Sequence record: PQ898602.1
Length of the DNA: 64,000 bases
Reading direction: 5' to 3' (one strand)
A program made the position numbers and the translations under genes. The notes below the pieces were generated by a model that had not been told where the DNA came from, did not search any database, and worked only from the letters and a program-made list of their open reading frames with translations. Each line of letters starts with the position of its first letter. Position 1 is the first letter of the stretch. Below are positions 48,074 to 64,000 of the stretch, one piece after another.

Positions 48074-50476
48074 ATGTCGCTTAATCTAGTATCACCAGGC
48101 GTAAAGGTTAGGGAAGTTGACCTAACTGTCGGAAGAATTGATCCTGTATTTGACCAAGTTGGTGGTTTCGTCGGACCCTTTGCTAAAGGTCCAGTTGGAG
48201 TACCAGTTCTGATCGAAACGGAGCAAGATCTTCTAGCAACATTTGGTAAGCCCAGCGAGGTTGATGGTCAAAACGAGTATTGGCTGACCGCTTCCGCTTA
48301 CCTTTCTTATGGTGGAGTACTAAACGTAGTTAGAGCAGACTCTTCTAGTTTAGTAAACTCCCACGTATCAGTAACCGACTCTGCAGTAGCAGGTCTTAAG
48401 ATTACTGGAACCGAAGACTACGAAAACAATCATATTAATGATACTACTTGGAAGTTCGCAGCAAGAAACCCAGGTAGTTGGGCAGATGAACTAAAAATCG
48501 CAGTTATCGATAACGCAGCTGACCAAAGACTAGGACTTGGTACCTTCGGTCTTCAAGTCGGTTATGCAGTAACAGTTGGTGTTTCCACTTCCTATGCAGG
48601 AACAGATGGAACAGTTAAGACATTCAACGGATATCTAAAGAGTATCATTACTCAGATTAACGTTGGTAGTGTTGACGTTAAGATTCTCAGTAAGTACGAC
48701 ATCGACAATGATGAGTGGTCAGAAGCTGAGTACACCCAGAGTGGTTTAGGTAGAATCCTTGGTGGATCAAACCAATACATCCAAGCGTTTAACAACGTTG
48801 GTGTTGCAGATTCCTTGGAGAAACTAAGATCTACAGATGGTGGAACAGTTTCTTCTGGTTCTACTTCTATCCAGTTCCCAAGTGGTTTTGATCTTACCAT
48901 CCTAGATGAGAACGATTTTATCACTTCTCTGAACGGAACATTCACTGGAAGAATTCATTCTGTTGATAATACCAACAACATTGTTTTCTCCGATACTGCA
49001 TCTCCAGTATCCCTTGCATCTACGACCATCGTATTTAAGTATGCAAGAAGTGCAAATGATGGTACTGATGCTAGAGGTGAAGGTCTTCTAACTGATAGTG
49101 GATTCACTGCAATTGACTGGTATGAGCAACAGAAGATTTCCCTAGCAAGTGGTGATGTCTTCTGGAAGAACATTGCTCCAAAACCAGGTACTTCCAATTA
49201 CGCTGCAGAAAGAAAGACCAAGAATGATGAAGTCAACATCGTTGTCATTGACGATAAAGGTGCAGTAAGTGGTGTTGCAGGTAATATCCTTGAGAAGTTT
49301 AACTCACTTTCCAAGGCAAATGACGGAAGAGTCACTCCTGCACAGAATGTACACTATAAGACATTCCTGGCACAAAGATCTGCATATGTCTTTGCTGGAA
49401 ACCAAGATACTCTACTCTCTCCTGGATTTACTTCTCTAGGTGGATATGCACTTCAAAGTGGTGCTTCTATTGCATGGAACCAAGATGCAACCTCGGTAAC
49501 ATTTGGTGTTCTAGGTAATAAGACATACACTCTTGCACATGGTGGAGACTATGGTGTCACCAAGTATGATGTAACTCTAGGTGATATCCTCACTGGTTAC
49601 GAGAAGTTCAGAAATCCTTCTGATGTTTCTGTCAACTATCTGATCAATGGACCTTCTGGTGGAGATACAATTTTTGAATCTCAAGCAAAGATCAACAAAC
49701 TGATTGATATTGCAAATGAGAGAAAGGATTGTGTTGTAACTGCATCCCCACATAAAGGTGGTGTTGTCAACGTAACTAACCCAGATACTCAAACAAGAAA
49801 CGTCATCGACTTCTTCGATGGTTGTACTTCTTCTTCCTATGCAGTATTTGATTCTGGTTATAAGTACACCTTTGATAGATTTAACAACAAGTTCCTCTAT
49901 ATCCCACTAAACGGAGATATTGCAGGTCTGATGTGCAGAACTTCTATCTCCAGTTTCCCATGGTTCTCGCCAGCGGGTGCTCAGAGAGGCACAATCAACA
50001 ATGCAGTTAAACTTGCATATAACCCATCCCAAACACAGAGAGATCTCCTCTATCCACAGAGAATTAACCCAGTTATCTTCTCGCCTGGTGCAGGTGTCAT
50101 CCTCTTCGGTGATAAGACCGCACTATCCTATTCATCTGCATTCGATAGAATCAACGTCCGTCGTCTATTCCTCACTATTGAGTCTGCAATCCAACGTGCT
50201 GCTCGCGCTCAACTCTTCGAGTTCAACGATGTTATCACAAGAACTAACTTCTTGAATATTGTCGAACCATATCTCCGTGATGTTCAAGCGAAGAGAGGAA
50301 TCACTGAGTTCCTAGTTGTTTGCGACGAGTCAAATAACACTCCAGATGTTGTTGACGCAAACCAGTTCAGAGCAGACATCTTCGTCAAACCAGCAAGATC
50401 GATCAACTTCATCGGTCTCACATTCGTAGCTAACAGAACTGGAGTTAGCTTTGAAGAGGTTGTTGGAACCGTCTGA
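48074..50476 (+). CDS. g18: Tail sheath protein gp18
   Basis: 800 aa. LVSPGVKVREVDLT, FAKGPV, SSYAVFDSGYKY.FDRFN, PWFSPAG.QRG, FDRINVRRLF and IFVKPARSINFIGLTFVA. Confidence 0.97.
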   Translation: MSLNLVSPGVKVREVDLTVGRIDPVFDQVGGFVGPFAKGPVGVPVLIETEQDLLATFGKPSEVDGQNEYWLTASAYLSYGGVLNVVRADSSSLVNSHVSVTDSAVAGLKITGTEDYENNHINDTTWKFAARNPGSWADELKIAVIDNAADQRLGLGTFGLQVGYAVTVGVSTSYAGTDGTVKTFNGYLKSIITQINVGSVDVKILSKYDIDNDEWSEAEYTQSGLGRILGGSNQYIQAFNNVGVADSLEKLRSTDGGTVSSGSTSIQFPSGFDLTILDENDFITSLNGTFTGRIHSVDNTNNIVFSDTASPVSLASTTIVFKYARSANDGTDARGEGLLTDSGFTAIDWYEQQKISLASGDVFWKNIAPKPGTSNYAAERKTKNDEVNIVVIDDKGAVSGVAGNILEKFNSLSKANDGRVTPAQNVHYKTFLAQRSAYVFAGNQDTLLSPGFTSLGGYALQSGASIAWNQDATSVTFGVLGNKTYTLAHGGDYGVTKYDVTLGDILTGYEKFRNPSDVSVNYLINGPSGGDTIFESQAKINKLIDIANERKDCVVTASPHKGGVVNVTNPDTQTRNVIDFFDGCTSSSYAVFDSGYKYTFDRFNNKFLYIPLNGDIAGLMCRTSISSFPWFSPAGAQRGTINNAVKLAYNPSQTQRDLLYPQRINPVIFSPGAGVILFGDKTALSYSSAFDRINVRRLFLTIESAIQRAARAQLFEFNDVITRTNFLNIVEPYLRDVQAKRGITEFLVVCDESNNTPDVVDANQFRADIFVKPARSINFIGLTFVANRTGVSFEEVVGTV

Positions 50477-50527
50477 TACATTTTCTAATTCACTTTCAAT
50501 CTCTAATTTACCGAGGAACCAAGAACA

Positions 50528-51220
50528 ATGAAATTCCCAAATTCTCCTACTTTTAATACCAGAACACTGGAGGACTTTAAAGCAAGACTCAAGGGAGGGG
50601 GCGCACGCCCCAACCTTTTTGAGTGTGTTATCAAATTCCCTGAATTGCTCGATGCAAAACTGAGCAATGATGAGCAGAATTCGATTAAGGAAGACACCAG
50701 ATTTATGATTAAGGCAGCTAATCTGCCTGCATCTAATGTCAACGTAATCGATGTTCCTTTCAGAGGAAGAAACCTCAAAGTTGCTGGTGATAGAACGTTC
50801 GATGTCTGGACCATTACAGTCATCAACGATGTTGATTTCAATATCAGAACCGCTTTCGAGAAGTGGATGAATATGATCAACAAGCATGACGACAACAGCG
50901 GTATTACTCGCCCTGGTCAATATCAAACTGACGCTTATGTCTACCAACTAGGTAGAAATGAAGGAGCAACTGCTCAACCACAAAAAATTCCTACTGGTGG
51001 TAGTCAGATCCCAGTTCTCAAGTCCTATAGATTCTATGGAGTCTTCCCAACTAATGTAAGTTCTATTGAACTTTCTTACGATCAGGCAGACACCATCGAA
51101 GAATTCACAGTTGATCTACAAGTTCAATGGTGGGATGCTCTCGATAACGAGGGTAACAGCCAACTGAACCCTGGTGATACTGAACAGGCTGGTGGAGGAA
51201 CCACAGGCGCAGGACTCTGA
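50528..51220 (+). CDS. g19: Tail tube protein gp19
   Basis: 230 aa. FKARLKGGGARPNLFE, KAANLPASN, VPFRGR.LKVAGDRTFD.WTITVIND and IEEFTVDLQVQWW. Confidence 0.96.
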   Translation: MKFPNSPTFNTRTLEDFKARLKGGGARPNLFECVIKFPELLDAKLSNDEQNSIKEDTRFMIKAANLPASNVNVIDVPFRGRNLKVAGDRTFDVWTITVINDVDFNIRTAFEKWMNMINKHDDNSGITRPGQYQTDAYVYQLGRNEGATAQPQKIPTGGSQIPVLKSYRFYGVFPTNVSSIELSYDQADTIEEFTVDLQVQWWDALDNEGNSQLNPGDTEQAGGGTTGAGL

Positions 51221-51232
51221 TATTTTGACCTA

Positions 51233-51239
51233 ATAAATA
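51233..51239 (+). promoter_or_regulatory. Late promoter ATAAATA for g20
   Basis: Intergenic, about 28 nt upstream of the g20 ATG. Overlaps the left arm of an 11-bp inverted repeat. Confidence 0.7.
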
Positions 51240-51267
51240 GTAAAAAGGAATTTTACTATTTTGAAGG

Positions 51268-52977
51268 ATGCCTGCTAAATTATTTGGTTTTAAAATCCAA
51301 GACGATGGAAACGACAGATCTAAAAAATCTGTCGTTTCTCCTGTGCCGGAGAATCAAGAAGATTCTTCGGATTTTTATGTGTCTAGTGGTTTTTATGGGC
51401 AATATGTAGATATTGAGGGTGTTTATAAATCCGAGTACGATTTAATTAAGAGATATAGAGAAATGGCACTGCATCCCGAGGTGGATGGTGCTATTGAAGA
51501 CGTTATTAACGAGGCAATCGTTTCTGATCAAAACGATTCTCCAGTACAGATCGATCTACAGAATTTACCTGCGTCGGACAGACTCAAGGACGCAATTAGA
51601 AACGAGTTTAGATATATCAAAGAGATTTTAGATTTTGACAAGAGATGTCATGAGATTATGAGAAACTGGTATGTAGATGGAAGAATCTACTACCATAAAG
51701 TTATTGATCTTGAAAAACCACAAGAGGGAATCAAAGAGGTCAGATACATTGACCCAATGAAAATTAAGTTGGTCAGAAAGATCAAGAAAGATGCAAAGAC
51801 TGCGATCAACCCATCATTTTCAGTAAGTGGTACGCAAAATGGTACGGGTTCTTTTGCAACCCCAGAAGTAGAAGAATTTTATGAATATAACCCAAATACT
51901 AGAGGCAGTGCGATCAATACTTCCCAATACAAATCGGGAATGGGAGGGGCAGCAAGAATTGCAAAGGATGCGATTACTTATGTACACTCTGGTCTTGTAG
52001 ATAGAAATAAGCAAGCAGTTCTTTCTTATCTCCACAAAGCAATCAAGGCACTCAATCAACTCAGAATGATTGAAGATTCTCTTGTCATCTATAGACTATC
52101 AAGAGCACCAGAACGTAGAATCTTCTATATTGATGTTGGCAATCTACCGAAGATCAAAGCGGAACAATACCTCCGCGATGTGATGAGTCGTTATCGCAAC
52201 AAACTAGTCTACGATTCTGCGACTGGTGAAATGCGTGATGATAAGAAGCATATGAGTATGCTTGAAGATTTCTGGCTCCCTAGACGCGAAGGTGGTCGTG
52301 GAACAGAAATTACTACCTTACCAGGTGGTCAAAATCTTGGCGAACTTACTGACGTTCAGTATTTCCAAAAGAAATTATACAGAGCACTTGGAGTTCCTGA
52401 GTCACGTCTTGGTGGTGAAGGTGGTTTCAATCTTGGTCGTTCTTCTGAAATTATAAGAGACGAAATCAAGTTTACCAAGTTCGTCGGAAGAATGAGAAAG
52501 AGATTTTCAGGAGTATTCCTGGATATGCTCAAGACTCAACTTATCCTTAAGAATATCGTAACTCCTGAAGATTGGAAACTACTTTCTGATCACATTCAAT
52601 TCGATTATGTCTACGACAATCATTTTGCAGAACTCAAAGAAGCAGAACTAATTCAAAATAGACTGGGTGTTCTTGCTGCTGCAGAACCTTATGTCGGTAC
52701 ATATTTCTCTGTTGATTATCTGAGAAGACATGTTCTAAAACAGACTGATTACGAAATTACAGAGATCGACGAAAGAATTGCATTTGAAAAAGAGATGGGT
52801 ATCATCCCTGGTGCAGAAGAAATGGAAGGTGAACTTCCAGCGGAAGAAGATCCCGCAGCTTCTGATGCAGCAATGGGTGAACCTGCAATGGATCCTGAGA
52901 TTGATGCATCTGCGGTTGAAGATGAACCAACTCAAGAGGCACCAAAAGCTAAAATGCCTAAGGGTGGCAGGATCTGA
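51268..52977 (+). CDS. g20: Portal protein gp20
   Basis: 569 aa. YREMALHPEVDGAIEDVINEAI, RNWYVDGRIYYHK, IYRLSRAPERRIFYIDVGNLPK.KAEQYL and EDFWLPRREGGRGTEITTLPGGQNLG. Confidence 0.98.
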   Translation: MPAKLFGFKIQDDGNDRSKKSVVSPVPENQEDSSDFYVSSGFYGQYVDIEGVYKSEYDLIKRYREMALHPEVDGAIEDVINEAIVSDQNDSPVQIDLQNLPASDRLKDAIRNEFRYIKEILDFDKRCHEIMRNWYVDGRIYYHKVIDLEKPQEGIKEVRYIDPMKIKLVRKIKKDAKTAINPSFSVSGTQNGTGSFATPEVEEFYEYNPNTRGSAINTSQYKSGMGGAARIAKDAITYVHSGLVDRNKQAVLSYLHKAIKALNQLRMIEDSLVIYRLSRAPERRIFYIDVGNLPKIKAEQYLRDVMSRYRNKLVYDSATGEMRDDKKHMSMLEDFWLPRREGGRGTEITTLPGGQNLGELTDVQYFQKKLYRALGVPESRLGGEGGFNLGRSSEIIRDEIKFTKFVGRMRKRFSGVFLDMLKTQLILKNIVTPEDWKLLSDHIQFDYVYDNHFAELKEAELIQNRLGVLAAAEPYVGTYFSVDYLRRHVLKQTDYEITEIDERIAFEKEMGIIPGAEEMEGELPAEEDPAASDAAMGEPAMDPEIDASAVEDEPTQEAPKAKMPKGGRI

Positions 52978-52983
52978 TAAATA
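52977..52983 (+). promoter_or_regulatory. Late promoter ATAAATA
   Basis: Adjacent to the g20 stop, about 30 nt upstream of the ATG at 53013. Confidence 0.65.
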
Positions 52984-53012
52984 AATTTACGTATCATTAA
53001 TTTCTACAAAAC

Positions 53013-53273
53013 ATGGATGATCTAATTGACATGATGGTGAAAGATGCTTCTGCGTCTGCAATCAGCGACAAGATTAAAGATATCTTGATGCAAAAGTCCG
53101 CAGCAAATATTGATGCGGTTAGACCTCAAGTTGCAGCTTCAATGTTTGGTGCAACTGGTGCAGAAGTTGAAGCAGACGCTGCAGAAGCAGAAGTCGAAAC
53201 GGAACCATCTGCAGAACTGGAAACTGAAGTAGATTCTGAAGAAGAAGAAACCCCAGAAGAGGAAACTGACTAA
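53013..53273 (+). CDS. Small acidic prohead core-like protein (gp67 position)
   Basis: 86 aa, DDLIDMMVKDASASAISDKIKDIL followed by a Glu-rich tail. Sits between portal and protease, like T4 g67. Confidence 0.7.
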   Translation: MDDLIDMMVKDASASAISDKIKDILMQKSAANIDAVRPQVAASMFGATGAEVEADAAEAEVETEPSAELETEVDSEEEETPEEETD

Positions 53274-53554
53274 TGGCTAATACTGGATATGTCCGTTATG
53301 ATGAGAACAATGATCAGGATTCTAGTCAACCAGGATCTGCGACAACTTCATATCTTGGCGGAACGACTGGTTGGTCAACGGTAACTCATAGAGATTTTAA
53401 CGCTGATTATATTGCATACACTTATAATAGTGCAGCAGGTATCGGAACTAGAACTCCAGCAGCGTATCAAAGACACGATGCTAACAATAATCCAGTTGGT
53501 GTCGGTACTTATCAACGACACGACGCAGACAATAATCCAGTAACAAGTCCATAG
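53273..53554 (+). CDS. Small hypothetical protein with YQRHDA-N-NNPV repeats
   Basis: 93 aa. TAATG overlap with the upstream gene. A 15-aa unit is duplicated (53465-53496 and 53510-53541). Confidence 0.7.
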   Translation: MANTGYVRYDENNDQDSSQPGSATTSYLGGTTGWSTVTHRDFNADYIAYTYNSAAGIGTRTPAAYQRHDANNNPVGVGTYQRHDADNNPVTSP

Positions 53555-53558
53555 TTTA

Positions 53559-53565
53559 ATAAATA
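53559..53565 (+). promoter_or_regulatory. Late promoter ATAAATA for g21
   Basis: Intergenic, about 28 nt upstream of the g21 ATG. Confidence 0.65.
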
Positions 53566-53593
53566 AAATATAAGACCTTAAGTAAGTAGTGAA

Positions 53594-54244
53594 ATGAAAC
53601 TTATTACGGAAGAGATTTCTAATGTAAAAATTATCACTGAAGGTAAGGGTTCTAACAAGAAACTCTATATCGAAGGTGTATTTTTACAGGGTGAGATCAA
53701 GAACAGAAACGGAAGAATGTATCCCATCGAAACTCTGAGAAGAGAAGTCGAAAGATACAACGAATCCTTTGTCCAAAAGGGAAGAGCTCTTGGAGAACTC
53801 GGTCACCCCGATGGTCCAACTGTAAACCTTGATCGTGTTTCCCATAAGATCACTTCACTAGTGCAAGAGGGTAACAACTTCAAAGGAAAAGCACAAATCC
53901 TCAATACCCCTATGGGTAAGATTGCATCTTCTCTTTTAGATGAAGGTGTAATGTTGGGTGTTTCCTCCCGTGGAGTTGGTTCACTCAAGATGACAAACGA
54001 AGGTCATAAAGTTGTCGGTGAAGATTTCATGTTAGCAACTGCTGCTGATATCGTCGCTGACCCTTCCGCTCCTGATGCATTTGTATCTGGAATCATGGAA
54101 GGTAAAGAGTGGGTTTGGGAAGGAGGTATCCTTCGTGAACAACTCGCTGAAAGAACTGAGAAGAGAATTAACACACTCGTCGATCAAAAAAGACTCGAAG
54201 AGCACAAGTTAAATCTGTTCCAAGAGTTTCTTTCAAATCTATAA
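53594..54244 (+). CDS. g21: Prohead core scaffold/protease gp21
   Basis: 216 aa. MKLITEE, LYIEGVFLQ...NRNGRMYP, ALGELGHPDGP, GVSSRGVGS and DIVADPSAPDAFV. Confidence 0.97.
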   Translation: MKLITEEISNVKIITEGKGSNKKLYIEGVFLQGEIKNRNGRMYPIETLRREVERYNESFVQKGRALGELGHPDGPTVNLDRVSHKITSLVQEGNNFKGKAQILNTPMGKIASSLLDEGVMLGVSSRGVGSLKMTNEGHKVVGEDFMLATAADIVADPSAPDAFVSGIMEGKEWVWEGGILREQLAERTEKRINTLVDQKRLEEHKLNLFQEFLSNL

Positions 54245-54246
54245 TT

Positions 54247-54258
54247 TATAAATAAATA
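54247..54258 (+). promoter_or_regulatory. Tandem late promoters TATAAATA/ATAAATA for g22-g23
   Basis: TATAAATAAATA upstream of a GGAG Shine-Dalgarno and the ATG at 54290. Confidence 0.85.
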
Positions 54259-54289
54259 CAGATTATACTAAGGTAATCGGAGAGTACAA

Positions 54290-55444
54290 ATGTCCAGTGG
54301 TAACGATTTACAAGAAATGGAAGTAGGCACTACACAATCCAAAACCGCAGTAAACGCAGGTGCTAAGCCAGCTGAACCAATGGTAAAACCATCAGGTGCT
54401 GCTGTCGAAGACCTCGGCGGTCCTACTCCAGAAAATAGCAAGCCAGACGATGACTCTAATAAAGTCAAAGAACCTGGTGCAACCCTTAAGCAAGTTAAGG
54501 ACGTTGTAAATGCTAAGGCAAAGCCTGCAGAGCCTATGGCTGCTGCAATGAAGGAAGAGGAAGTTGAGACGGAAGTCGAAGCTGACCAGGAAGTAGTTGC
54601 TGAAGCTGAAGAGGAAGTTACCTCTGAAGTTGAAGAGGTTGTATCCGAAGAAGAGACTACCGAAGAGGAAGTCGTTTCTGAAGAAGAAACTTCTGAAGAC
54701 GAAGTTGTTGTAGAGTACAACGTCGAAGAAGATGTTGAAGCACTACTTCAAGGCGAAGAACTCTCCGAAGAGTTTAGAGAGAAGGCTAAGACCATTTTCG
54801 AGGCTGCTCTCCACGCTAAAGCCAAAGAAATCCAGACCTCTCTGGAAGAGCAGTATGCTACTGCACTTGCAGAAGAAGTTGAAGAAATCAAAGTCGCTCT
54901 GACCGAACGTGTTGATTCATACCTTGAGTATGTTTCTTCCGAATGGTTAGAAGAGAATGCTCTCGCTGTTGAGAGTGGTCTTAAGACTGAGATCACCGAG
55001 TCCTTCATGGATGGCATGAAGACACTCTTTGAAGAACATTATGTATCAATGCCTGAAGAAAAATATGATGTACTAGAGAGCATGGTACAGAAACTAGATG
55101 ATATGGAGACGAAACTCAACGAGCAGATCGAGCGCAATATTGCACTCAATGGTAAGCTCTCCGAGAGTTCTGCTGACAGAATTTTCGGTCAAGTTGCTGA
55201 AGGTCTCGCAATCTCCCAAAAGGATAAGTTTGCAACCCTCGCAGAAAGTGTTGAGTTTGAGAGTGAAGAGAACTATAGAGAGAAACTAGAAACTCTGAAG
55301 AAGTCTTACTTCTCTGAGCATGCTAGTGCTCCTGCTGACGAAACGGAAAATCTAACCGAAGAGGCAGATTTCAGCGAAGAGACCAAAGTGTCTTCTACAA
55401 TGGATGCCTATCTGAAAGCACTTTCCAACGTTACTAACAAGTGA
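54290..55444 (+). CDS. g22: Prohead core (scaffold) protein gp22
   Basis: 384 aa, Glu-rich. LSEEFREKAKTIFEAA, VDSYLEYV..EWLEEN.LAVE.G and YREKLETLKKSYF. Confidence 0.95.
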   Translation: MSSGNDLQEMEVGTTQSKTAVNAGAKPAEPMVKPSGAAVEDLGGPTPENSKPDDDSNKVKEPGATLKQVKDVVNAKAKPAEPMAAAMKEEEVETEVEADQEVVAEAEEEVTSEVEEVVSEEETTEEEVVSEEETSEDEVVVEYNVEEDVEALLQGEELSEEFREKAKTIFEAALHAKAKEIQTSLEEQYATALAEEVEEIKVALTERVDSYLEYVSSEWLEENALAVESGLKTEITESFMDGMKTLFEEHYVSMPEEKYDVLESMVQKLDDMETKLNEQIERNIALNGKLSESSADRIFGQVAEGLAISQKDKFATLAESVEFESEENYREKLETLKKSYFSEHASAPADETENLTEEADFSEETKVSSTMDAYLKALSNVTNK

Positions 55445-55503
55445 GTTTTAGATAATACTCAAACCGCAGCTAAACAACACACCTACGAGGTTTAAAAGTT
55501 AAA

Positions 55504-56868
55504 ATGGACCAAAATACCCAACAATTAATGGAGAAGTGGGCTCCAATCCTGGACTATGAAGGTGCAGGTGAAATCAAGGATGCTCACCGCCGTGCAGTTA
55601 CCGCACAACTTCTAGAGAACCAAGAGCGCGAAGCACATGAACAGGCTAGCTTCCTCGGAGAGGCAGCACCTGCTAACTCTGGTCACGCTCCTGCAGGATC
55701 CAACGTTGATGGATTCGACCCTGTTCTGATCTCCCTGATCAGACGCTCCATGCCTAACCTCATCGCATACGACGTATGTGGTGTTCAGCCAATGTCTGGT
55801 CCTACTGGACTGATCTTCGCAATGCGCTCCCGCCGCGATGGTCAGACTGGTGCTGAGACCTTCTACGATGAAGTAGATTCCACCTTCTCTGCACAGAACA
55901 ACAGCCGTGACCTCACTGGCGGTTTCTCTGGTGCTGCAGTTGGTATGGGTACTACCAACCAAGACGGAACCAACCCTGGTGTTCTGAACCCAACTGGTTC
56001 TGCTGATCAGACCGCATATAACGTCGGTCAGGGTATGACCACTGCTGAGGCAGAGGCACTCGGAGATGCATCTGACAATGCATTCAACCAGATGGCATTC
56101 TCGATCGAGAAAGTCACCGTAACCGCTAAGTCTAGAGCACTGAAGGCAGAATACAGCCTTGAGCTTGCACAAGACCTGAAGGCGATCCATGGTCTGAACG
56201 CTGAGGCTGAACTCGCAAACATTCTCTCCACCGAGATTCTTGCTGAGATCAACCGCGAAGTCATCAGAACCATCTACAAGACCGCTGAACAGGGTGCAAC
56301 TGCTAACGTTGCTAACGGCGGTACCTTCGACCTCGACGTTGACTCTAACGGACGTTGGAGTGTTGAGAAGTTCAAGGGTCTTCTGTTCCAAATCGAGCGC
56401 GATGCAAACGCAATCGCACAAAGAACTCGTCGCGGAAAGGGCAACACCATCATCTGCTCTGCTGATGTTGCGTCTGCTCTAACCATGGCTGGTGTTCTCG
56501 ATTACACCCCTGCACTCAACGCTAACCTGAACGTTGATGACACTGGTAACACCTTCGCTGGTGTTCTCCAAGGTAAGTATCGCGTCTACATCGATCCTTA
56601 TGCTGCAAACGTAGATTCTAACCAGTACTACGTTGTTGGTTATAAGGGTTCTAGCGCATACGACGCAGGTCTCTTCTACTGCCCATATGTACCTCTCCAG
56701 ATGGTACGTGCAGTTGGACAAGACACCTTCCAGCCCAAGATTGGCTTCAAGACCCGCTATGGTATTGTTGCTAACCCATTCGCAGAAGGTACCAACGCAG
56801 GTCTCGGTGCTCTCACCGTTAACGCTAACCGCTACTATCGTCGCGTCAAGGTTGCTAACCTCATGTGA
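55504..56868 (+). CDS. g23: Major capsid protein gp23
   Basis: 454 aa. EKWAPILD, LLENQE, FDPVLISLIRRSMPNLIAYDVCGVQPMSGPTGLIFAMR, KSRALKAEYS.ELAQDLKAIHGL and FQPKIGFKTRYG. Strong C-ending codon bias. Confidence 0.99.
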   Translation: MDQNTQQLMEKWAPILDYEGAGEIKDAHRRAVTAQLLENQEREAHEQASFLGEAAPANSGHAPAGSNVDGFDPVLISLIRRSMPNLIAYDVCGVQPMSGPTGLIFAMRSRRDGQTGAETFYDEVDSTFSAQNNSRDLTGGFSGAAVGMGTTNQDGTNPGVLNPTGSADQTAYNVGQGMTTAEAEALGDASDNAFNQMAFSIEKVTVTAKSRALKAEYSLELAQDLKAIHGLNAEAELANILSTEILAEINREVIRTIYKTAEQGATANVANGGTFDLDVDSNGRWSVEKFKGLLFQIERDANAIAQRTRRGKGNTIICSADVASALTMAGVLDYTPALNANLNVDDTGNTFAGVLQGKYRVYIDPYAANVDSNQYYVVGYKGSSAYDAGLFYCPYVPLQMVRAVGQDTFQPKIGFKTRYGIVANPFAEGTNAGLGALTVNANRYYRRVKVANLM

Positions 56869-56889
56869 TCGATACCCCTTAGGGGAAAC

Positions 56890-56923
56890 AAAAAGAGGTG
56901 GGTCTTCGGACCCCCCTTTTTTT
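56890..56923 (+). terminator. Strong, probably bidirectional, terminator after g23
   Basis: AAAAAGAGGTGGGTC-TTCG-GACCCCCCTTTTTTT has a C(UUCG)G tetraloop with a T-tract on the + strand and an A-tract upstream. Confidence 0.9.
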
Positions 56924-56927
56924 ATGT

Positions 56928-56934
56928 CTAAATA
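56928..56934 (+). promoter_or_regulatory. Late promoter CTAAATA downstream of the g23 terminator
   Basis: Followed by an AAAGGA Shine-Dalgarno-like sequence and the ATG at 56957. Confidence 0.7.
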
Positions 56935-56956
56935 TAGAAAAGGATAGTAATTTCCA

Positions 56957-57115
56957 ATGAAACCAACTCCAAGACAAAGCAAAGAAATTCATGAGAACTA
57001 CGAGAAAGTAGTTGATCATCTTATTTCTGAAGGATATTCAGAAGATAAAGAATCTGCAGATTCCATCATCAATGGAATGAGTGAATCCTGGTACAACCTA
57101 ATCATCTCTGAATGA
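56957..57115 (+). CDS. 52-aa hypothetical protein with L..EGY...A..I...MSE.W motif, not in the ORF track
   Basis: MKPTPRQSKEIHENYEKVVDHLISEGYSEDKESADSIINGMSESWYNLIISE. Has its own late promoter and stops 3 nt before g3. Confidence 0.7.
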   Translation: MKPTPRQSKEIHENYEKVVDHLISEGYSEDKESADSIINGMSESWYNLIISE

Positions 57116-57118
57116 TAA

Positions 57119-57658
57119 ATGATTGATCCGTTTTATAAGCAAGTTGCCAATAGAAACTTCCTAGCAACAACTGGGTTTAAGTTTACATTGGCACGAGCAC
57201 CGAAAGCCGACTTTTTCTCCAATCAGGTAAACATTCCTGGATTTAGTCTTGGGGTTGCGATTCAACCAACGTACCTCAAGAATATTCCTGTACCTGGAGA
57301 TAAGTTGGAGTTCAATGACTTCACAATGAGATTCATGATTGATGAAGATCTTGTCAATTACAATGTAATTTCAAACTGGATGAGAGGTCTTGGTTATCCA
57401 GAGAACGTCAAAGAATACTCGGATTGGATTTACGACGATCATAGAGGCAACATCAACAACGATCCAAACATCTCAGATGGATCACTAATTGTCTATAATA
57501 GTAACTTCCAACCAACTCTAACTTGCAAATTCCAAGGAATGTTCCCAACTTCCTTATCTGATATTGAATTTGATGCAAGTGCTACCGATGAAGCGTATGC
57601 GACTGCATCTGTAACTTTTAAGTATGTAATTTATGACCTCCTTGAATATGAATCTTGA
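57119..57658 (+). CDS. g3: Tail tube terminator/completion protein gp3
   Basis: 179 aa. NRNFLATTGFKF, VNIPGFSLG, PGDKLEFNDFTMRFMIDEDLVNY..I.NWMRGLG and FPTSLS.IEFD. Confidence 0.92.
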   Translation: MIDPFYKQVANRNFLATTGFKFTLARAPKADFFSNQVNIPGFSLGVAIQPTYLKNIPVPGDKLEFNDFTMRFMIDEDLVNYNVISNWMRGLGYPENVKEYSDWIYDDHRGNINNDPNISDGSLIVYNSNFQPTLTCKFQGMFPTSLSDIEFDASATDEAYATASVTFKYVIYDLLEYES

Positions 57659-58076
57659 TGAAATTCAAAAACTATGGGAAGAAGACTCAAAAATAGATGA
57701 AGACAATCTCCACACAGAATCCACAAAGATTCCAAGTCTTCATGCAAAATATTATCGTCTCTTCAATACTATCCTGACTCTGAAGAAAGCTCAGGAAAAT
57801 AAGTACAAGATTTTAAGAAAAGAAAAGTGGCAATATTACACAGGGAAAGCAGAACCCGATGTGTATATTGAAAAACCCTTTGATCATAAGGTTCTAAAGA
57901 ATGACCTAGACAAATATCTTGATGCAGATGAAGATCTGATCAGGTGTCAGACCAAGATGGAATATTATCAGATGATGTTGAACTATCTGGACAGCATCAT
58001 CAAAACTATCTTAAATAGAACATACCAGTTGAAAAATGCCATTGAATGGCAGAAATTTATTAGAGGATATGACTGA
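57648..58076 (+). CDS. uvsY: Recombination mediator UvsY
   Basis: Likely start is MNLDEIQ at 57648. WEEDSKID.DNLH.ES.KIP.LHAKY and RTYQLKNAIEWQKF motifs. Confidence 0.92.
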   Translation: MNLDEIQKLWEEDSKIDEDNLHTESTKIPSLHAKYYRLFNTILTLKKAQENKYKILRKEKWQYYTGKAEPDVYIEKPFDHKVLKNDLDKYLDADEDLIRCQTKMEYYQMMLNYLDSIIKTILNRTYQLKNAIEWQKFIRGYD

Positions 58077-59532
58077 TATTGTAATTGCAAAGAAGAACGA
58101 AGTATTTCTGAAACTGAAGGCAGAACCTCATATTTTTCAGGAATTATCTGAACACTTTACTTTTGATGTACCAGGGGCAAAGTTTATGCCTCAGTACAGA
58201 AGTAAGTATTGGGATGGAAAAATTAGATTGTTCTCTACTCACACGGGAGAAATCTATGTCGGTCTTCTCGACAAGGTAGTTTCTTGGGCAAAAAGATACG
58301 ATTACAATATTGAGTTTGAAAATAATAAGTTCTACGGAACTCCTTTAGAAGAGAATGAAATGATTTCTCGTGAAGGGGTCAAAGACTATATGACCAGAAT
58401 CTCAAAACACAAACCAAGAGATTATCAGGTCGATGCAGTATATGATGCACTTAGATATAATCGCAAGTTGTTAATCTCTCCAACTGCGTCAGGTAAGTCA
58501 TTGATGATTTACTCTGTTGTTAGATATTTTGCAGAAAGAAATCAAAAGACTCTTCTAGTTGTTCCTACAACGTCTTTGGTTGAACAGATGTTCAAGGACT
58601 TCCAAGACTATGGATGGAATGCAGAGGATTACTGCCACCGCATCTACAGCGGTCGTGAAAAGACGAATGAGTTCCCTGTAGTGATTACCACCTGGCAGTC
58701 CATCTATAAACTGCCTAGAGGATTCTACGATGCATTCGATGTAGTCATTGGTGATGAAGCACACCAGTTCAAATCAAAGTCTCTGGTCAATATCATGACC
58801 AAACTTGCAGATGCAAAATATCGTTTTGGTTTCACAGGAACTCTCGATGGAACACAAACACATAAATGGGTTCTGGAAGGATTGTTTGGTCCATCTTATA
58901 AAGTTACGCAGACAAAAGAACTCATTGATAAAGGTCATCTATCCAAATTACAAATCAAGATTATTATCTTAAAACACAATCCTCAAGAGTTTGAAGCTTT
59001 TGAAGATGAAGTTCAATTCATCATTCAACATCAAAAACGGAATAACTTTATCAAGAATCTTGCATTAGATCTGAAGGGTAATACTCTTGTCCTTTTCCAA
59101 AGAGTAGAAACTCATGGACAACCTTTATATGAATCGATAAATAGTTCTGTGAAGGATGGAAGAAAAGTATTTTACGTTCATGGAGGAGTGGACGCAGAAG
59201 AAAGGGAATATATCAGAGCAATCACAGAAAAGGAAAACAATGCAATCATTGTTGCATCTTACGGAACATTTTCCACAGGTATCAATATCAAGAACCTTCA
59301 TAATGTGATCTTTGCTTCTCCATCCAAATCTAGAATTAGAAATCTGCAGAGTATTGGTAGAGTTCTCAGGAAGGGAGACAACAAGACACAAGCAGTTTTG
59401 TATGACATTGCTGATGATTGTACAAAAAATTCAAGAAAGAACTACACACTAAATCATTTGATTGAAAGAGTTAAGATCTATAATGAAGAGAACTTTAACT
59501 ATGAATTCATTCAAGTAAACCTCAAAGAATAA
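58069..59532 (+). CDS. uvsW: SF2 DNA/RNA helicase UvsW
   Basis: Likely start is at 58069 after an AGAGGA Shine-Dalgarno. WDGKIRLF, SPTASGKS, VIGDEAH, GFTGTL, ASYGTFSTGINI and LQSIGRVLR motifs. Confidence 0.97.
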   Translation: MTDIVIAKKNEVFLKLKAEPHIFQELSEHFTFDVPGAKFMPQYRSKYWDGKIRLFSTHTGEIYVGLLDKVVSWAKRYDYNIEFENNKFYGTPLEENEMISREGVKDYMTRISKHKPRDYQVDAVYDALRYNRKLLISPTASGKSLMIYSVVRYFAERNQKTLLVVPTTSLVEQMFKDFQDYGWNAEDYCHRIYSGREKTNEFPVVITTWQSIYKLPRGFYDAFDVVIGDEAHQFKSKSLVNIMTKLADAKYRFGFTGTLDGTQTHKWVLEGLFGPSYKVTQTKELIDKGHLSKLQIKIIILKHNPQEFEAFEDEVQFIIQHQKRNNFIKNLALDLKGNTLVLFQRVETHGQPLYESINSSVKDGRKVFYVHGGVDAEEREYIRAITEKENNAIIVASYGTFSTGINIKNLHNVIFASPSKSRIRNLQSIGRVLRKGDNKTQAVLYDIADDCTKNSRKNYTLNHLIERVKIYNEENFNYEFIQVNLKE

Positions 59533-59535
59533 CTT

Positions 59536-59949
59536 ATGGAAGAAGACTTCTATGCAGTAGTAAAATTAATATCTGGTGAAGAGATCTTTGCAATTGTCTG
59601 TCCTACATTTGAGGATGAAAGACAAATGTTGATTCTTAATAATCCAGTGACCATTGAAATTATTGCAATGAAAAATATCGGAATGCAAGGTTATAAAATT
59701 GATCCTTGGTTACGATTTGCTGATGATGATACATTTCTACTGAGCATGGATAGAGTAATTACTATCAGTGAAGTCAGAGATGATGAAACGATTGAGATGT
59801 ATCACAAATTTATAAGACAACAAGAACAGAGAAATAGTGCTCCTCAACTCAAGAGTCAGCAAGGTTACGTAAATTCAGTAACCGATGCAAGAAAAATGTT
59901 TGAGAAACTCTATAACTCTAAAGAAGAAGAATCTAAAGATAATAGCTGA
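59536..59949 (+). CDS. Cyanophage Sm-like fold protein (putative RNA binding)
   Basis: 137 aa. VVKLISGEEI...DPWLRFADDDTFLLSMDRVITISE matches the KL..GE.I / PW......VIT pattern of phage Sm-like proteins. Confidence 0.65.
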   Translation: MEEDFYAVVKLISGEEIFAIVCPTFEDERQMLILNNPVTIEIIAMKNIGMQGYKIDPWLRFADDDTFLLSMDRVITISEVRDDETIEMYHKFIRQQEQRNSAPQLKSQQGYVNSVTDARKMFEKLYNSKEEESKDNS

Positions 59950-59970
59950 TCTTTGAAACTCCACAGAGTA

Positions 59971-59999
59971 ATTGTATCGATTATCAGAGGTGTTGTCAA
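59971..59999 (-). promoter_or_regulatory. Antisense sigma70-type promoter TTGACA-N17-TACAAT
   Basis: Reverse complement of 59994-59999 is TTGACA and of 59971-59976 is TACAAT, with a 17-nt spacer. Confidence 0.65.
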
Positions 60000-60021
60000 G
60001 TCTTTCGGATAATGTTATAAT
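59993..60021 (+). promoter_or_regulatory. Sigma70-type promoter for g55: TTGTCA-N17-TATAAT with extended TG
   Basis: TTGTCA at 59993-59998 and TG-T-TATAAT at 60013-60021. AAGGA Shine-Dalgarno-like sequence before the g55 ATG. Confidence 0.8.
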
Positions 60022-60056
60022 TTGAACAACTTAGTATAAAAAGGACTCATGGAACC

Positions 60057-60530
60057 ATGCAAAAACGTAAAAGATCCGAACATTATGTAAACAACAAAGA
60101 GTTTCTTGCAGCAATCATTGCTTACAAAGATAGTGTTGCTCTTGCTGAAACCAGAGGTGAACCAAAACCACGTATTACCAATTACCTTGGTGAGTGTTTC
60201 TTGAAGATCGCTACTCATCTTTCTTACAAACCAAACTTTGTCAATTATATGTTCCGTGAGGACATGATCTGTGATGGAATCGAAAATTGCGTTCAGTACA
60301 TTCATAATTTTAATCCTGAGAAATCCTCGAATCCTTTTGCTTACTTTACGCAGATCATTCATTATGCATTTCTCCGTAGAATCCAGAAGGAGAAAAAACA
60401 AATGGAGATCCGTACCAAAATCATTGAGAGGTCTGGTTACGACGAAGTGTTCACCGTAGATGGTGACAGTTACAATTCTGCAGAGTATAATTCCATTAAA
60501 GACGCTATTCAGACAAAGATGTATCAATGA
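60057..60530 (+). CDS. g55: Late transcription sigma factor gp55
   Basis: 157 aa. HYVNNKEFL, YLGECFLKIATHLSYKPNFVNY, EDMICDGIENC.QY..NFNPEKS.NPFAYFTQI..YAFLRRIQKEK. Confidence 0.97.
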   Translation: MQKRKRSEHYVNNKEFLAAIIAYKDSVALAETRGEPKPRITNYLGECFLKIATHLSYKPNFVNYMFREDMICDGIENCVQYIHNFNPEKSSNPFAYFTQIIHYAFLRRIQKEKKQMEIRTKIIERSGYDEVFTVDGDSYNSAEYNSIKDAIQTKMYQ

Positions 60531-61573
60531 GTTCTATTGCACTGATTACTGACACCCATTACGGAGGACGTAAGGGTAGTAAAACCTTTCATGATTATTT
60601 TAAAAGATTCTACGAAGACATCTTTTTCCCAGAACTAGAGAAACGGAAGATCAAGGATGTAATTCACCTCGGTGATGCATTTGATAGTCGGAAGTCTATT
60701 GACTTCTGGTGTCTTGATTGGGCAAAGGAAAATGTCTATGACAGGTTCCGAGATCTGGGTATCAAGGTTCACCAGATTGTCGGTAATCATGATGCATATT
60801 ATAAGAACACTAACGATGTCAACTCCATCGAGTCCCTTTTAAGAGAGTATGACAATATCGTTCCTATTTCTGGACCAGGTGAATATAATGTTGGTGGATG
60901 CAAAACCTTCTTGATTCCTTGGATCTCTGCAGAGAATCGTGAAGAGACTCTTGAGAAGATGTCTAAAACCAAAGCAAAAGTCGCATTTGGTCATCTAGAA
61001 CTCAAAGGATTTGCAGTATATCCTGGTAATGTTCAACATCATGGTATGGAGACTGATGTCTTCGATAAGTTCAACGCAGTTTATTCTGGTCACTATCACA
61101 CCAGATCAAACGATGGAAAGATCTTCTACATCGGTAATCCGTACCAACTCTTTTGGAATGATTGCAATGACAAGAGAGGATTTAGTTTCTTCGATACAGA
61201 AACGTTTGAACTTGAGTTTGTTCAGAATCCATACACTATCTTTGAGAAAGTATATTACGAAGATACTAACTACAAACTTTACAACACAACAGATCTAAAA
61301 GATAAGATTGTAAAACTTATCGTTCGCAAAAAGTCAGATCAACTTCAGTTTGAGAAGTTTGTTGATAAGGTTTACAAGTCTGGTGTTCATGATTTAAAGA
61401 TCGTTGAAAACCTTGATGTCTATGACGAAGAAGTCGAACTAGACTCTGAAAAGGTAGAAGACACTATCACCATTTTAAATAAATATGTTCAAGACTCTGA
61501 TTTTGAACTGGACAAAGAGAAAGTCAAATCACTATTAAGAGAGGTTTACCAGGAAGCTTGCGAGGTAGAGTAA
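60527..61573 (+). CDS. g47: Recombination endonuclease subunit gp47 (SbcD/Mre11-like)
   Basis: 348 aa. ITDTHYG, HLGDAFD, VGNHD, FGHLE and SGHYH phosphoesterase motifs. Confidence 0.97.
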   Translation: MSSIALITDTHYGGRKGSKTFHDYFKRFYEDIFFPELEKRKIKDVIHLGDAFDSRKSIDFWCLDWAKENVYDRFRDLGIKVHQIVGNHDAYYKNTNDVNSIESLLREYDNIVPISGPGEYNVGGCKTFLIPWISAENREETLEKMSKTKAKVAFGHLELKGFAVYPGNVQHHGMETDVFDKFNAVYSGHYHTRSNDGKIFYIGNPYQLFWNDCNDKRGFSFFDTETFELEFVQNPYTIFEKVYYEDTNYKLYNTTDLKDKIVKLIVRKKSDQLQFEKFVDKVYKSGVHDLKIVENLDVYDEEVELDSEKVEDTITILNKYVQDSDFELDKEKVKSLLREVYQEACEVE

Positions 61574-61837
61574 ATGTTCATGCTAACTGCAATTGAAGAG
61601 GATGGTGCATATGCAGTAGTCGAAGAAGACGGCGAAAAGACTCTATACTTTTTTCAAGATCAAGACGATGCTTTCAGATATGCTCTACTTCTAGAAGCAG
61701 ATGGACACCCAGAGATGGAAGTTGCAGAAATAGATCCTGCACTTGCAATTAAGACATGTCATGAGTATAATTATAACTATACAATAATTACTCCTGAGGA
61801 GTTCGTTATACCACCTAGACCTGATGATAGTTTTTGA
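61574..61837 (+). CDS. Small acidic hypothetical protein between g47 and g46
   Basis: 87 aa, GAYAV...GEKTLYFFQDQDDAFRYA.LLEA. Abuts both neighbours. Confidence 0.75.
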   Translation: MFMLTAIEEDGAYAVVEEDGEKTLYFFQDQDDAFRYALLLEADGHPEMEVAEIDPALAIKTCHEYNYNYTIITPEEFVIPPRPDDSF

Positions 61838-63539
61838 TAGGATTCGTTGGAAGAACTTCCTGAGTACGGGAAATAACTTCACCGAAGTGAATTTTCAAGA
61901 TGCACAAACAAATCTAATCCTCGGAACGAATGGTTCTGGTAAGAGTACGATTCTTGATGCTCTTACCTTTTCTTTGTATAATAAACCATTCAGGAAGATC
62001 AATAAACCCCAACTAGTCAACTCTGTGAACGAGAAGGAGTGTCTAGTTGAGGTTGAGTTTTCTATTGGATCTAGAGAATATAAAGTAATTCGTGGTATCA
62101 GACCAAATATTTTTGAGATCTGGGTCGATGGTAAGGTTCAGGATCAAGATGCTGCAGCCGCAGATCAACAGAAAAAACTCGAAGAGAGTATCCTGAAACT
62201 TAATTACAAGTCTTTTACTCAAACTGTCATTCTGGGCTCTGCAACGTTTGTTCCCTTCATGCAGTTGACATCTTCAAACCGCAGGGACATTGTTGAAGAT
62301 CTGTTGGATATTAAGATCTTTTCCACCATGAGTTCTATCCTGAAAGACAGGATGCGTAGAACTAATGAACTCATTAGGGAGTTTTCGATCAAGAAAGATA
62401 TGATCGAAGACAAGATTGAGATGCAAGAGAACTTTATCAAAGATATTGAGAAGAGTGGTAGAGAACGCATCCAGAAAAAAGAATCAAATATTGAATCTCT
62501 TGATGGTGAAATTGTAACTATTACCAAAGAGAATGAGTCTCTTATGACTCGTATTGATACAGAACTCAAACCCAAGTTAGAGAATCTTAACAACTCTAAG
62601 AAAACTCTTAAGAAACTGAACACAATTAAAGCGAAACTGGAACAGAAGATACAAAATTTAGTATCAGAACACCAGTTTTTCCAAGAGAATTCGGTTTGCC
62701 CTACCTGTACCCAGTCTATTGAGGAGCAGTTTCGCCTAGATAAAATTGTAGACATCGAGAAGAACTCAAAAGAACTCAATGACGGATACAAAGAACTTGA
62801 GGATGCGATCAATGTAGAACAAGAAAAGGACCAAAAGTTTTTAACTTATTCTACGGAGATAAACAGACTCAACAATGACATTTCTACAAACAATGTTAAG
62901 GTCACTGGTCTTAATAGACAAATCAGAACTCTCAGAAATGAAGTTCAAGAAATTACCAACCAAATACAGAACAGAAATTCTGAAAAGTGTGTACTTGAAG
63001 GTTTAGTCAAAGATCTTAGCAAAACTGAAGAAAGTTCAGCACAAGAACGAGAACAATCTACTTATTATGAGTTCGCTCATTCACTCATGAAGGATGGTGG
63101 AGTAAAGTCTAAAATCATCAAAAAGTATCTGCCTGTTATGAACCAGCAGATAAACAAGTATCTACAGATGATGGACTTTTACATCAACTTCACGTTGGAT
63201 GAAGAGTTTAAGGAGGTTATCAAATCACCAGTCCATGAGGACTTTAGTTATGAATCGTTCAGTGAAGGTGAGAAGATGCGTATTGACCTGGCGCTACTAT
63301 TCACTTGGCGGGATATTGCCAAGATGCGAAATTCAGCCAGTACAAATCTTCTCATCCTGGACGAGATCTTCGATAGTTCACTAGACGATGCAGGAACTGA
63401 GTTCTTCACCAAGATTATCAGATATGTGATTCAAGATGCCCACGTATTCGTAATCTCACACAAGACTGACGGAATCATTGATCAGTTCGATAAAGTCATG
63501 AGGTTCGATAAAGTCAAAGGGTTTAGTAAACTACTATAG
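61824..63539 (+). CDS. g46: Recombination ATPase subunit gp46 (SbcC/Rad50-like)
   Basis: 571 aa. WKNFLSTGN, GTNGSGKST Walker A, CPTCTQ zinc hook, FSEGEKMRIDLAL signature, LILDEIFDSSLD and VISH. Confidence 0.98.
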   Translation: MIVFDRIRWKNFLSTGNNFTEVNFQDAQTNLILGTNGSGKSTILDALTFSLYNKPFRKINKPQLVNSVNEKECLVEVEFSIGSREYKVIRGIRPNIFEIWVDGKVQDQDAAAADQQKKLEESILKLNYKSFTQTVILGSATFVPFMQLTSSNRRDIVEDLLDIKIFSTMSSILKDRMRRTNELIREFSIKKDMIEDKIEMQENFIKDIEKSGRERIQKKESNIESLDGEIVTITKENESLMTRIDTELKPKLENLNNSKKTLKKLNTIKAKLEQKIQNLVSEHQFFQENSVCPTCTQSIEEQFRLDKIVDIEKNSKELNDGYKELEDAINVEQEKDQKFLTYSTEINRLNNDISTNNVKVTGLNRQIRTLRNEVQEITNQIQNRNSEKCVLEGLVKDLSKTEESSAQEREQSTYYEFAHSLMKDGGVKSKIIKKYLPVMNQQINKYLQMMDFYINFTLDEEFKEVIKSPVHEDFSYESFSEGEKMRIDLALLFTWRDIAKMRNSASTNLLILDEIFDSSLDDAGTEFFTKIIRYVIQDAHVFVISHKTDGIIDQFDKVMRFDKVKGFSKLL

Positions 63540-63549
63540 ACACCTCAAG

Positions 63550-63594
63550 AAGTGTCACATAACCTCTGGGAGACCAGGGGTTTTGTCGTATATT
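63550..63594 (+). promoter_or_regulatory. Cyanomyovirus early-type promoter (AAGTGTCACA box, palindrome, TATATT -10); the hairpin may also terminate g46
   Basis: AAGTGTCACA at 63550-63559. AACCTCTGG-GAGA-CCAGGGGTT 9-bp stem at 63561-63582. TATATT at 63589-63594. Confidence 0.65.
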
Positions 63595-63616
63595 GGATTC
63601 ATACGAAAGGAAGTCC

Positions 63617-64000
63617 ATGCCCGTCAACAAAGAAATCAAAGGAAACCTTGCTCGTCTTCTTGCAACCGAAGATCTGGTTGTGGAACACAAGAACGTTGCA
63701 ACTGCATCCTTCAATGTTGACACTCGCGTCTTGATCCTCCCTCAGTGGGACAGGGCTTCCAATGAAGTCTATGACATGTTGGTGGGTCACGAAGTTGGTC
63801 ATGCACTCTACACTCCGAATCAAGATATTCCCAAATCCATTCCCCACCAGTTTGTGAACGTGGTTGAGGATGCTCGTATCGAGAAACTAATGAAACGTCG
63901 GTACGGAGGTTTGAACAAAACTTTCTTCCGTGGATACACCGAACTACATGAAGAAGATTTCTTCCAAGTAAAAGACGACGATATCTCTACTTTCAATCTT
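63617..64000 (+). CDS. HExxH metallopeptidase / CobT-like protein, 3'-truncated, not in the ORF track
   Basis: Manual translation: MPVNKEIKGNLARLLATEDLVVEH...TASFNVDTRVLILPQW...YDMLVGHEVGHALYTP...NVVEDARIEKLMKRRY. GAAAGGAAG Shine-Dalgarno upstream. Open to the window end. Confidence 0.88.
   Translation, partial: MPVNKEIKGNLARLLATEDLVVEHKNVATASFNVDTRVLILPQWDRASNEVYDMLVGHEVGHALYTPNQDIPKSIPHQFVNVVEDARIEKLMKRRYGGLNKTFFRGYTELHEEDFFQVKDDDISTFNL

Follow-up and report, generated by a model that had tools for sequence, protein, structure and literature searches.

Immediately upstream of g55, the gene for the late sigma factor, we found an element that on its pattern of conservation is very probably a real sigma70-type promoter and that points away from g55 into the end of the preceding late operon. 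It forms part of a cassette of about 52 nt (cTTGACAag, 17 nt, TAnnnT, palindrome) which is present in one to four copies per genome. The copy at g55 is the universal one, while extra copies are often sense-oriented and head gene clusters. Our analysis started from a window of 64,000 nt of S-SCSM2R (PQ898602.1), to whose positions all coordinates refer unless another record is named; record positions 121500–122600 are 100% identical to 59500–60600 of the window. There the whole cassette, made up of an extended -35, a 17-nt spacer, a -10, the palindrome and the first transcribed bases, occupies 59950–60001 on the minus strand.

The gene names assigned to this neighbourhood in the first-pass annotation were borne out by PHROG and Pfam matches. 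On the plus strand g23 (55504–56868) is followed by a g3-like gene of the tail-tube family (57119–57658), uvsY (57633–58076), uvsW (58036–59532), an Sm-like gene as the last of the late unit (59536–59949; phrog_471, E=2.5e-36; Pfam Sm_like PF16243, 31.3 bits) and g55 (60057–60530, ATG at 60057; phrog_234, E=1.3e-69). The genes g47, starting at 60527, and g46 lie 3' of g55 on the same strand. The gap from g23 to the g3-like gene contains a 52-aa ORF (56957–57115, plus strand) with no match to a PHROG family. The Sm-like gene is a constant neighbour of the g55 cassette; its family phrog_471 is labelled 'methylamine utilization' in many records, although its product is more likely an Sm/Hfq-like RNA-binding protein, since it scores above the Pfam Sm_like threshold.

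In RNA-seq classes published for P-HM2, g3, uvsY, uvsW and the Sm-like homologue PHM2_128 are Late (D) and g55, the next gene and g47 are Middle (C); these supplements give gene timing without phage antisense counts (Thompson et al. 2016, S2 Table). These classes place the cassette at a late-to-middle boundary. It lies 8–15 nt past the last stop codon of the late unit (g23...uvsY-uvsW-Sm-like), into which it is aimed, and the promoter of the middle unit g55-g47-g46 stands back-to-back with it. A plus-strand intrinsic terminator between the Sm-like gene and g55 was not found in the window.

Two promoters overlap at this boundary. The forward one, assigned to g55, has a -35-like hexamer TTGTCA (59993–59998, plus strand, 5/6) and an extended -10, TGtTATAAT (60013–60021, with TG at 60013–60014 and TATAAT at 60016–60021), and its predicted start is at about 60028. 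The reverse one has the -35 hexamer TTGACA (59999→59994, minus strand, 6/6), which shares five bases with the forward hexamer, and the -10 hexamer TACAAT (59976→59971, 5/6). Both pairs, TTGTCA-17-TATAAT and TTGACA-17-TACAAT with their overlap at 59993–59999, proved exact in coordinates and sequence as originally described. The two -10 hexamers (59971–59976 and 60016–60021) are 40 bp apart and the predicted starts about 64 bp. Sigma70 geometry puts the predicted antisense start at a G at 59964, seven nt past the -10 and in the middle of a conserved TGT, which is near-invariant in relatives at this distance from the reverse -10. The reverse promoter is antisense to annotated genes, facing the 3' end of the Sm-like gene and uvsW.

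Both promoters have a 17-nt spacer and match at 11/12 positions, and they are the top two matches in 50000–64000. Only four 11/12 sites occur on both strands of the 64-kb window, the other two being located within coding sequence. The complete cassette stands out clearly, with a PWM score of 37.2 against -4.6 for the next-best site in the 64-kb window and a covariance model score of 45.5 bits (E=6.7e-9). Promoter-like sites as such were not enriched, 25 being found where 30.8 were expected from shuffles, so that chance is ruled out by conservation in relatives and not by the site count. This matters because TTGACA is nearly its own reverse complement, and a good forward -35 in AT-rich DNA could thus easily yield a spurious reverse promoter. 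The count at shuffle level and the 11/12 sites inside genes agree with such a chance by-product. We nevertheless consider it highly implausible: the reverse element is family-wide and rigid in geometry, it is kept more strictly than the forward promoter and persists where the forward promoter has a -35 of its own, and the loci in which it is found are not near-identical recent copies (gp55 identity 59–94%).

Conservation was assessed in 80 IMG/VR loci retrieved by gp55 protein similarity alone (72–94% identity), to which five isolates with a gp55 identity of 59–69% were added (S-PM2, P-SSM2, S-RIM2, S-SZBM1 and the Pelagibacter myophage HTVC008M). The 83 distinct sequences were aligned with MAFFT, anchored on the reverse -35 hexamer, and the covariance model was built from this alignment. 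The model found exactly one cassette match per locus in 85/85 g55 loci, scoring between 28.5 and 69 bits, and the cassette lies on the strand opposite g55 in all 85 loci as well as in the window. P-HM2 also carries it at g55. When g55 upstream regions are anchored on TGTCAA, essentially every locus displays an ungapped, position-locked block which reads, opposite to g55, cTTGACAag, 14 variable bases, G, TAnAAT, AAC, pyrimidines, TGT and a G-rich arm ending in GTT. The predicted antisense start corresponds to about position 84439 in S-PM2 and 120709 in P-HM2.

Within the alignment the reverse -35 TTGACA is present in 83/83 sequences; the alignment is anchored on this hexamer, yet each locus had one. 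In the -10, T-12, A-11 and T-7 are invariant (83/83) and the middle three positions vary, giving TACAAT, TAGAAT, TAGACT, TATAAT, TACACT, TATGAT and others. The spacer measures 17 nt in 74 of the 83 sequences, 18 nt in seven and 16 nt in two, and its sequence is free and not conserved as a whole. Conserved bases outside the hexamers are the C and the AG that flank the -35 on its 5' and 3' sides, AAA(T) within the spacer and the G that precedes the -10. The fixed T, A and final T, the variable middle and the fixed spacer length are the signature of selection on sigma70 promoter function. The reverse element has the sequence features of a sigma70 promoter, namely TTGACA, TAnnnT with T-12, A-11 and T-7, and a spacer of 17 ± 1 nt. 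The first-pass annotation had made its antisense promoter depend on conservation of the -10 at 59971–59976, and this hexamer is kept in every relative examined. HTVC008M carries the cassette at 2307–2358 of the retrieved locus, where TTGACA-17-TATAAT is perfect and the palindrome differs (AGGCATGTGCCT); its occurrence in a phage of an alphaproteobacterial host indicates that the element is not tied to cyanobacterial hosts.

Compared with the reverse promoter, the forward one is freer in position. Its -10 reads TATAAT in 65/83 relatives and carries the TG extension in 71/83, but the distance from TTGTCA to this -10 is 16–18 nt in only 56 of the 83, 7–8 nt in 14, 25–31 nt in 11, and 43 and 81 nt in the remaining two. 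Relatives in which this distance is off-length have another -35-like hexamer 17 nt upstream of the forward -10. S-PM2 and P-HM2 have their own separate forward TTGACA for g55, and in HTVC008M the forward promoter is located about 95 nt away. Conservation of both hexamer pairs and both 17-nt spacers, which the first-pass annotation had proposed as a check, held for the reverse promoter, at 17 nt in most relatives, but not for the forward spacing. Since the forward -10 lies at a usable distance in just these 56 relatives, the shared TTGTCAA core is not what is under selection. The overlap is one arrangement among several, and with the variable distance and the separate -35 hexamers the proposed mutual exclusion with g55 transcription is not a conserved property of the family.

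Two further sites around g55 were noted. In the g55 leader, TATAAAAA lies at 60035–60042 (plus strand) between the forward -10 and the ribosome-binding site, with one mismatch to the T4 late-promoter core TATAAATA; on inspection, its conservation in relatives was not apparent. Inside the 3' end of g55 lies the 11/12 promoter-like site GTGACA-17-TATAAT (60463–60491, plus strand), with g47 beginning about 36 nt further on at 60527. It may serve g47 and g46 as an internal promoter or may have arisen by chance.

The cassette ends in a palindrome that surrounds the predicted antisense start. In the window it reads ACTC-CACA-GAGT (59958–59969), a 4-bp stem centred on the predicted start and the weakest form in the family. 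In relatives the stem has 5–7 bp with compensatory variants, and its loop holds the conserved TGT. The variants include AACTCT/AGAGTT, AACTCT/AGGGTT, AACCTT/GAGGTT, AACAGT/GCTGTT, AACCGT/GCGGTT and GCTCT/AGAGC, and AGGC/GCCT in the pelagiphage. Mean folding energy is -3.3 kcal/mol, compared with -1.1 kcal/mol for shuffles and -0.4 to -1.1 kcal/mol for flanking segments. In 60 of 82 sequences G-T pairs make the promoter-strand stem the more stable one. Column-wise covariation in the model-based alignment was marginal, with 78.3% paired against 76.6% for shuffles, a value reached by 12/500 shuffles; the model misses a one-base register shift between stem variants, and per-sequence folding gave the clearer result. 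Taken together, a structure of the palindrome is supported but not proven.

Several readings of these bases were discarded. A 5' RNA hairpin of the antisense transcript is out on geometry, because the predicted start comes only after the left arm. A role as terminator of the late unit on the plus strand is unlikely, as the plus-strand stem is weaker (mean -1.9 versus -3.3 kcal/mol) and the sense copies have no T-run. By eye, the conserved bases fit neither an NtcA site (GTA-N8-TAC) nor a LexA-like box.

The palindrome matches within genomes. Among six two-copy genomes, identity over the 19 nt past the -10 is 82% for copies of one genome and 59% between genomes, and the true pairing of copies is the best of 720 permutations, whereas the spacers of the same genomes lack this effect (40% within versus 37% between). 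In S-SCSM2R three copies have an identical 17-mer in common, and the fourth (record 54033–54084) has the family-consensus palindrome. This matching suggests a genome-encoded recognising factor or local gene conversion. The palindrome might be where control is exerted, through a phage-encoded factor that uses it as an operator or through a hairpin specific to one strand. The entire element could instead be a regulatory site for g55 that binds a protein, whether as an upstream site of an activator or repressor or as an operator independent of RNAP, and that only resembles a sigma70 promoter. A palindrome that varies between genomes and matches within them would be expected of operators of phage-encoded regulators, and extra bases are conserved outside the hexamers. 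Against this, the invariant positions are those critical for sigma70, the 17-nt spacing is fixed and the spacer sequence free, sense copies lie at promoter distance from genes, and the distance to the g55 promoter ranges from overlap to about 95 nt. We judge this possibility to be distinctly improbable.

The other copies of the cassette define its scope. A PWM scan of the complete S-PM2 genome gave two matches, scoring 54.5 and 47.2 against 2.8 for the next-best site and a genome mean of -78. These are the antisense g55 copy and, just past the gp5 region, a sense copy that precedes S-PM2p214 by 53 nt. S-PM2 has dozens of sigma70-like sites, with the palindrome at these two only. Sense copies also head small- or auxiliary-gene clusters in S-MbCM6, SynMITS9220M01, S-SM1 (CP12, cpeT) and S-RIM12, and in IMG/VR contigs one lies after nrdA-nrdB, in front of a RusA-like gene. 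Many IMG/VR matches to the bare pattern are unrelated generic consensus promoters or coding sequence.

The complete scan of S-SCSM2R revealed four cassette copies including the one at g55. Two are in sense orientation on the plus strand, one at record 54033–54084 in a 490-nt gap within a small-gene array and one at record 178470–178521, 79 nt upstream of a segE-like GIY-YIG homing-endonuclease gene; sense copies in S-PM2 and S-SCSM2R lie 53–80 nt upstream of the ATG. The remaining one is a second antisense copy (record 37726→37674, minus strand), TTGACA-18-TATAAT with the 17-mer of the g55 copy. It is located just after a tail-fibre gene and a 64-aa ORF and back-to-back with a forward promoter, TTGACT-17-TATATT, which drives SSCSM2R_47, and so repeats the boundary architecture seen at g55. 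With these other copies, a g55-specific element is out. A general early promoter is out as well, since the early-gene region of P-HM2 (30–62 kb) has no match even with filters off; in the 84 kb of P-HM2 that were scanned there is no copy beyond the one at g55.

We also analysed what follows the predicted antisense start. Conservation stops about 20 nt past it, still in the intergenic region and before the coding region is reached. Minus-strand ORFs downstream of the reverse promoter are limited to 40–41 aa, begin with TTG and lie inside the Sm-like gene, and among the 83 relatives the longest minus-strand ORF beginning at most 150 nt from the predicted start has a median length of 23 aa, in line with the earlier statement that no credible minus-strand gene follows. 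A conserved minus-strand terminator was not found: terminator-like sites within 1.5 kb are absent from 52 of 82 relatives and vary in position among the others. An Rfam scan of 56500–61000 on both strands at E≤1 returned nothing but a chance-level RAGATH-19 match (56840–56952, 24.7 bits versus a gathering threshold of 85.6), which overlaps the g23 hairpin.

This GC-rich hairpin after g23 (56900–56913) is flanked by a T-run on either strand and looks like a bidirectional terminator; its distance to the predicted start is about 3.05 kb. In the first-pass annotation it was the first minus-strand terminator noticed; hairpin and T-runs are real, but weaker sites lie nearer. One is a weak terminator-like site about 1.16 kb from the predicted start (58803–58782, minus strand), and another, the nearest reasonably convincing one at about 1.9 kb, is a terminator-like hairpin with a 6-bp stem followed by TTTTT (58051–58037, minus strand), which is not conserved in relatives. 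An antisense RNA of about 3 kb ending at the g23 hairpin is thus not implied, given these nearer sites, none of which is conserved in relatives. The hairpin at 58037–58051 is perfect (TGCCAT-TGA-ATGGCA) and lies exactly at the uvsW start codon within the uvsY/uvsW overlap, where it could have an effect on translational coupling. With no conserved terminator, ORF or RNA structure past the start, the product of the reverse promoter is undefined; the defined 3' end or conserved RNA structure of a discrete cis-antisense RNA was not found.

These observations bear on whether the promoter acts as an antisense brake specific to the Sm-like gene, uvsW or uvsY. The transcript itself, or head-on collisions with it, would hold these late genes in check until transcription of the host type declines. 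They lie antisense to the promoter, and in P-HM2 they are late while g55 is middle. A conserved pairing region or terminator is missing, however, as conservation ends so soon after the start, and the second antisense copy of S-SCSM2R follows a tail-fibre gene and not uvsW. The architecture therefore tracks late-operon ends and not UvsW, which makes a UvsW-specific brake less likely. Such a brake, which overlaps with the explanation that we prefer below, appears improbable to us.

Another function of a promoter without a gene would be a transcription-primed replication origin of the T4 oriF/oriG type, in which the geneless RNA would be kept as an R-loop, prime the leftward leading strand and be removed by late UvsW. 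We rate this as rather unlikely. An inflection of GC skew is rare in T4-like phages, and skew is not defining for R-loop origins. The skew of S-PM2, uniformly positive and with no inflection at 84 or 163 kb, the sites of its two copies, is uninformative here. Against an origin stand the modest size of the AT enrichment and the ordinary-looking promoters that the other copies form before genes. In its favour, a geneless promoter is universal beside uvsY/uvsW and aimed into late genes, a G-cluster lies past the start site, and the region from +26 to +50 is 75% AT compared with about 66% in the flanks (82 relatives); in the window, +26 to +75 is 72–76% AT versus 60% overall. T4 R-loop origins consist of a middle promoter and an AT-rich unwinding element, lie in late-gene regions and are silenced by late UvsW (PMC3016281). 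Like ori(uvsY) and ori(34) the cassette comprises a promoter without an obligatory gene product in a late-gene neighbourhood with uvsY/uvsW, with a possible link to UvsW, whereas the T4 origins have a MotA-dependent promoter and a clear A+T-rich unwinding element, and the cassette has no MotA box and weak AT enrichment (PMC3016281). Since the reverse promoter possesses a canonical sigma70 -35 and not a MotA-type -30 element, the MotA-box definition of T4 is inapplicable to it.

The element can be compared with other known arrangements. Host-like sigma70-type middle promoters have reportedly been described in T4-like cyanophages, with Syn9 as the example. The cassette resembles them in its TTGACA/TAnnnT pattern and the predicted use of unmodified host RNA polymerase, and g55 and its neighbours are middle genes; it differs as a rare subclass of one to four per genome versus dozens of sigma70-like sites, adds the start-site palindrome, and its universal copy faces no gene. 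In lambda PR/PRM-type arrangements back-to-back divergent promoters compete for RNA polymerase. Close outward-facing promoters are also present in the window, where the -35s have five bases in common and about 64 bp separate the predicted starts, but the overlap at the g55 locus is not conserved in relatives and one partner has no gene. Bidirectional promoters are said to arise from -10 symmetry, with a shared -10 region and starts about 18 bp apart. Divergent transcription from near-palindromic promoter elements is predicted here as well; the g55 pair, in contrast, shares the -35, each promoter has its own -10, and the reverse unit is separately conserved. CfrI of S-PM2, an annotated misc_RNA, is likewise antisense in a lytic T4-like cyanophage and overlaps a gene end, as predicted for the g55 locus, yet CfrI is a mapped discrete RNA at psbA/F-CphI, while the g55-locus transcript is a prediction without a defined 3' end.

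Weighing these readings, we consider it probable, if by no means certain, that the cassette is a functional promoter for host RNA polymerase directed head-on into the end of the late operon, acting by interference or insulation and by local competition at the overlap. Within this explanation the promoter function is to be trusted above the interference or insulation role. Host RNA polymerase with its group-1 sigma (sigma70) would bind the reverse element and start an untranslated transcript near 59964 that runs antisense across the Sm-like gene into uvsW. Being strong, occupied and head-on, such a promoter would oppose read-through from the late unit into g55, so that transcriptional interference or insulation at the late/middle boundary is its most likely role. 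Where the two promoters overlap, as in the window, it would also compete with the g55 promoter. Unlikely, though less so than the alternatives discussed above, is a cassette that is a dedicated boundary element of the Kyanoviridae, an operator or hairpin promoter centred on the start site that would bring in host RNA polymerase head-on to late operons. It would either prime replication by an R-loop directed into the late-gene block or act as a polymerase-based terminator and timer for g55, in both cases under the control of a phage-encoded factor co-evolving with the palindrome.

Sigma70-type promoters, antisense promoters and divergent pairs are all already known. The apparent novelty lies in a cassette that bears a palindrome and of which the universal copy, antisense and without a gene of its own, keeps its place next to g55 throughout the family; an earlier description was not found in the literature searched, which did not extend to the Syn9 start-site study (Doron et al. 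2016).

The element is small, intergenic and precisely placed, and mutations in it would hence leave all proteins unaltered. The marine cyanomyoviruses rank among the most abundant ocean viruses, and gp55 is the master switch of late gene expression in T4-like phages. To our knowledge, the middle-to-late timing of cyanomyoviruses, which lack the MotA/AsiA system of T4, is poorly understood. A geneless, backwards host-type promoter that the whole family keeps beside g55, and keeps more strictly than the promoter of g55, makes a strong candidate component of middle-to-late control; alternatively, the cassette could be a cyanomyovirus replication origin.
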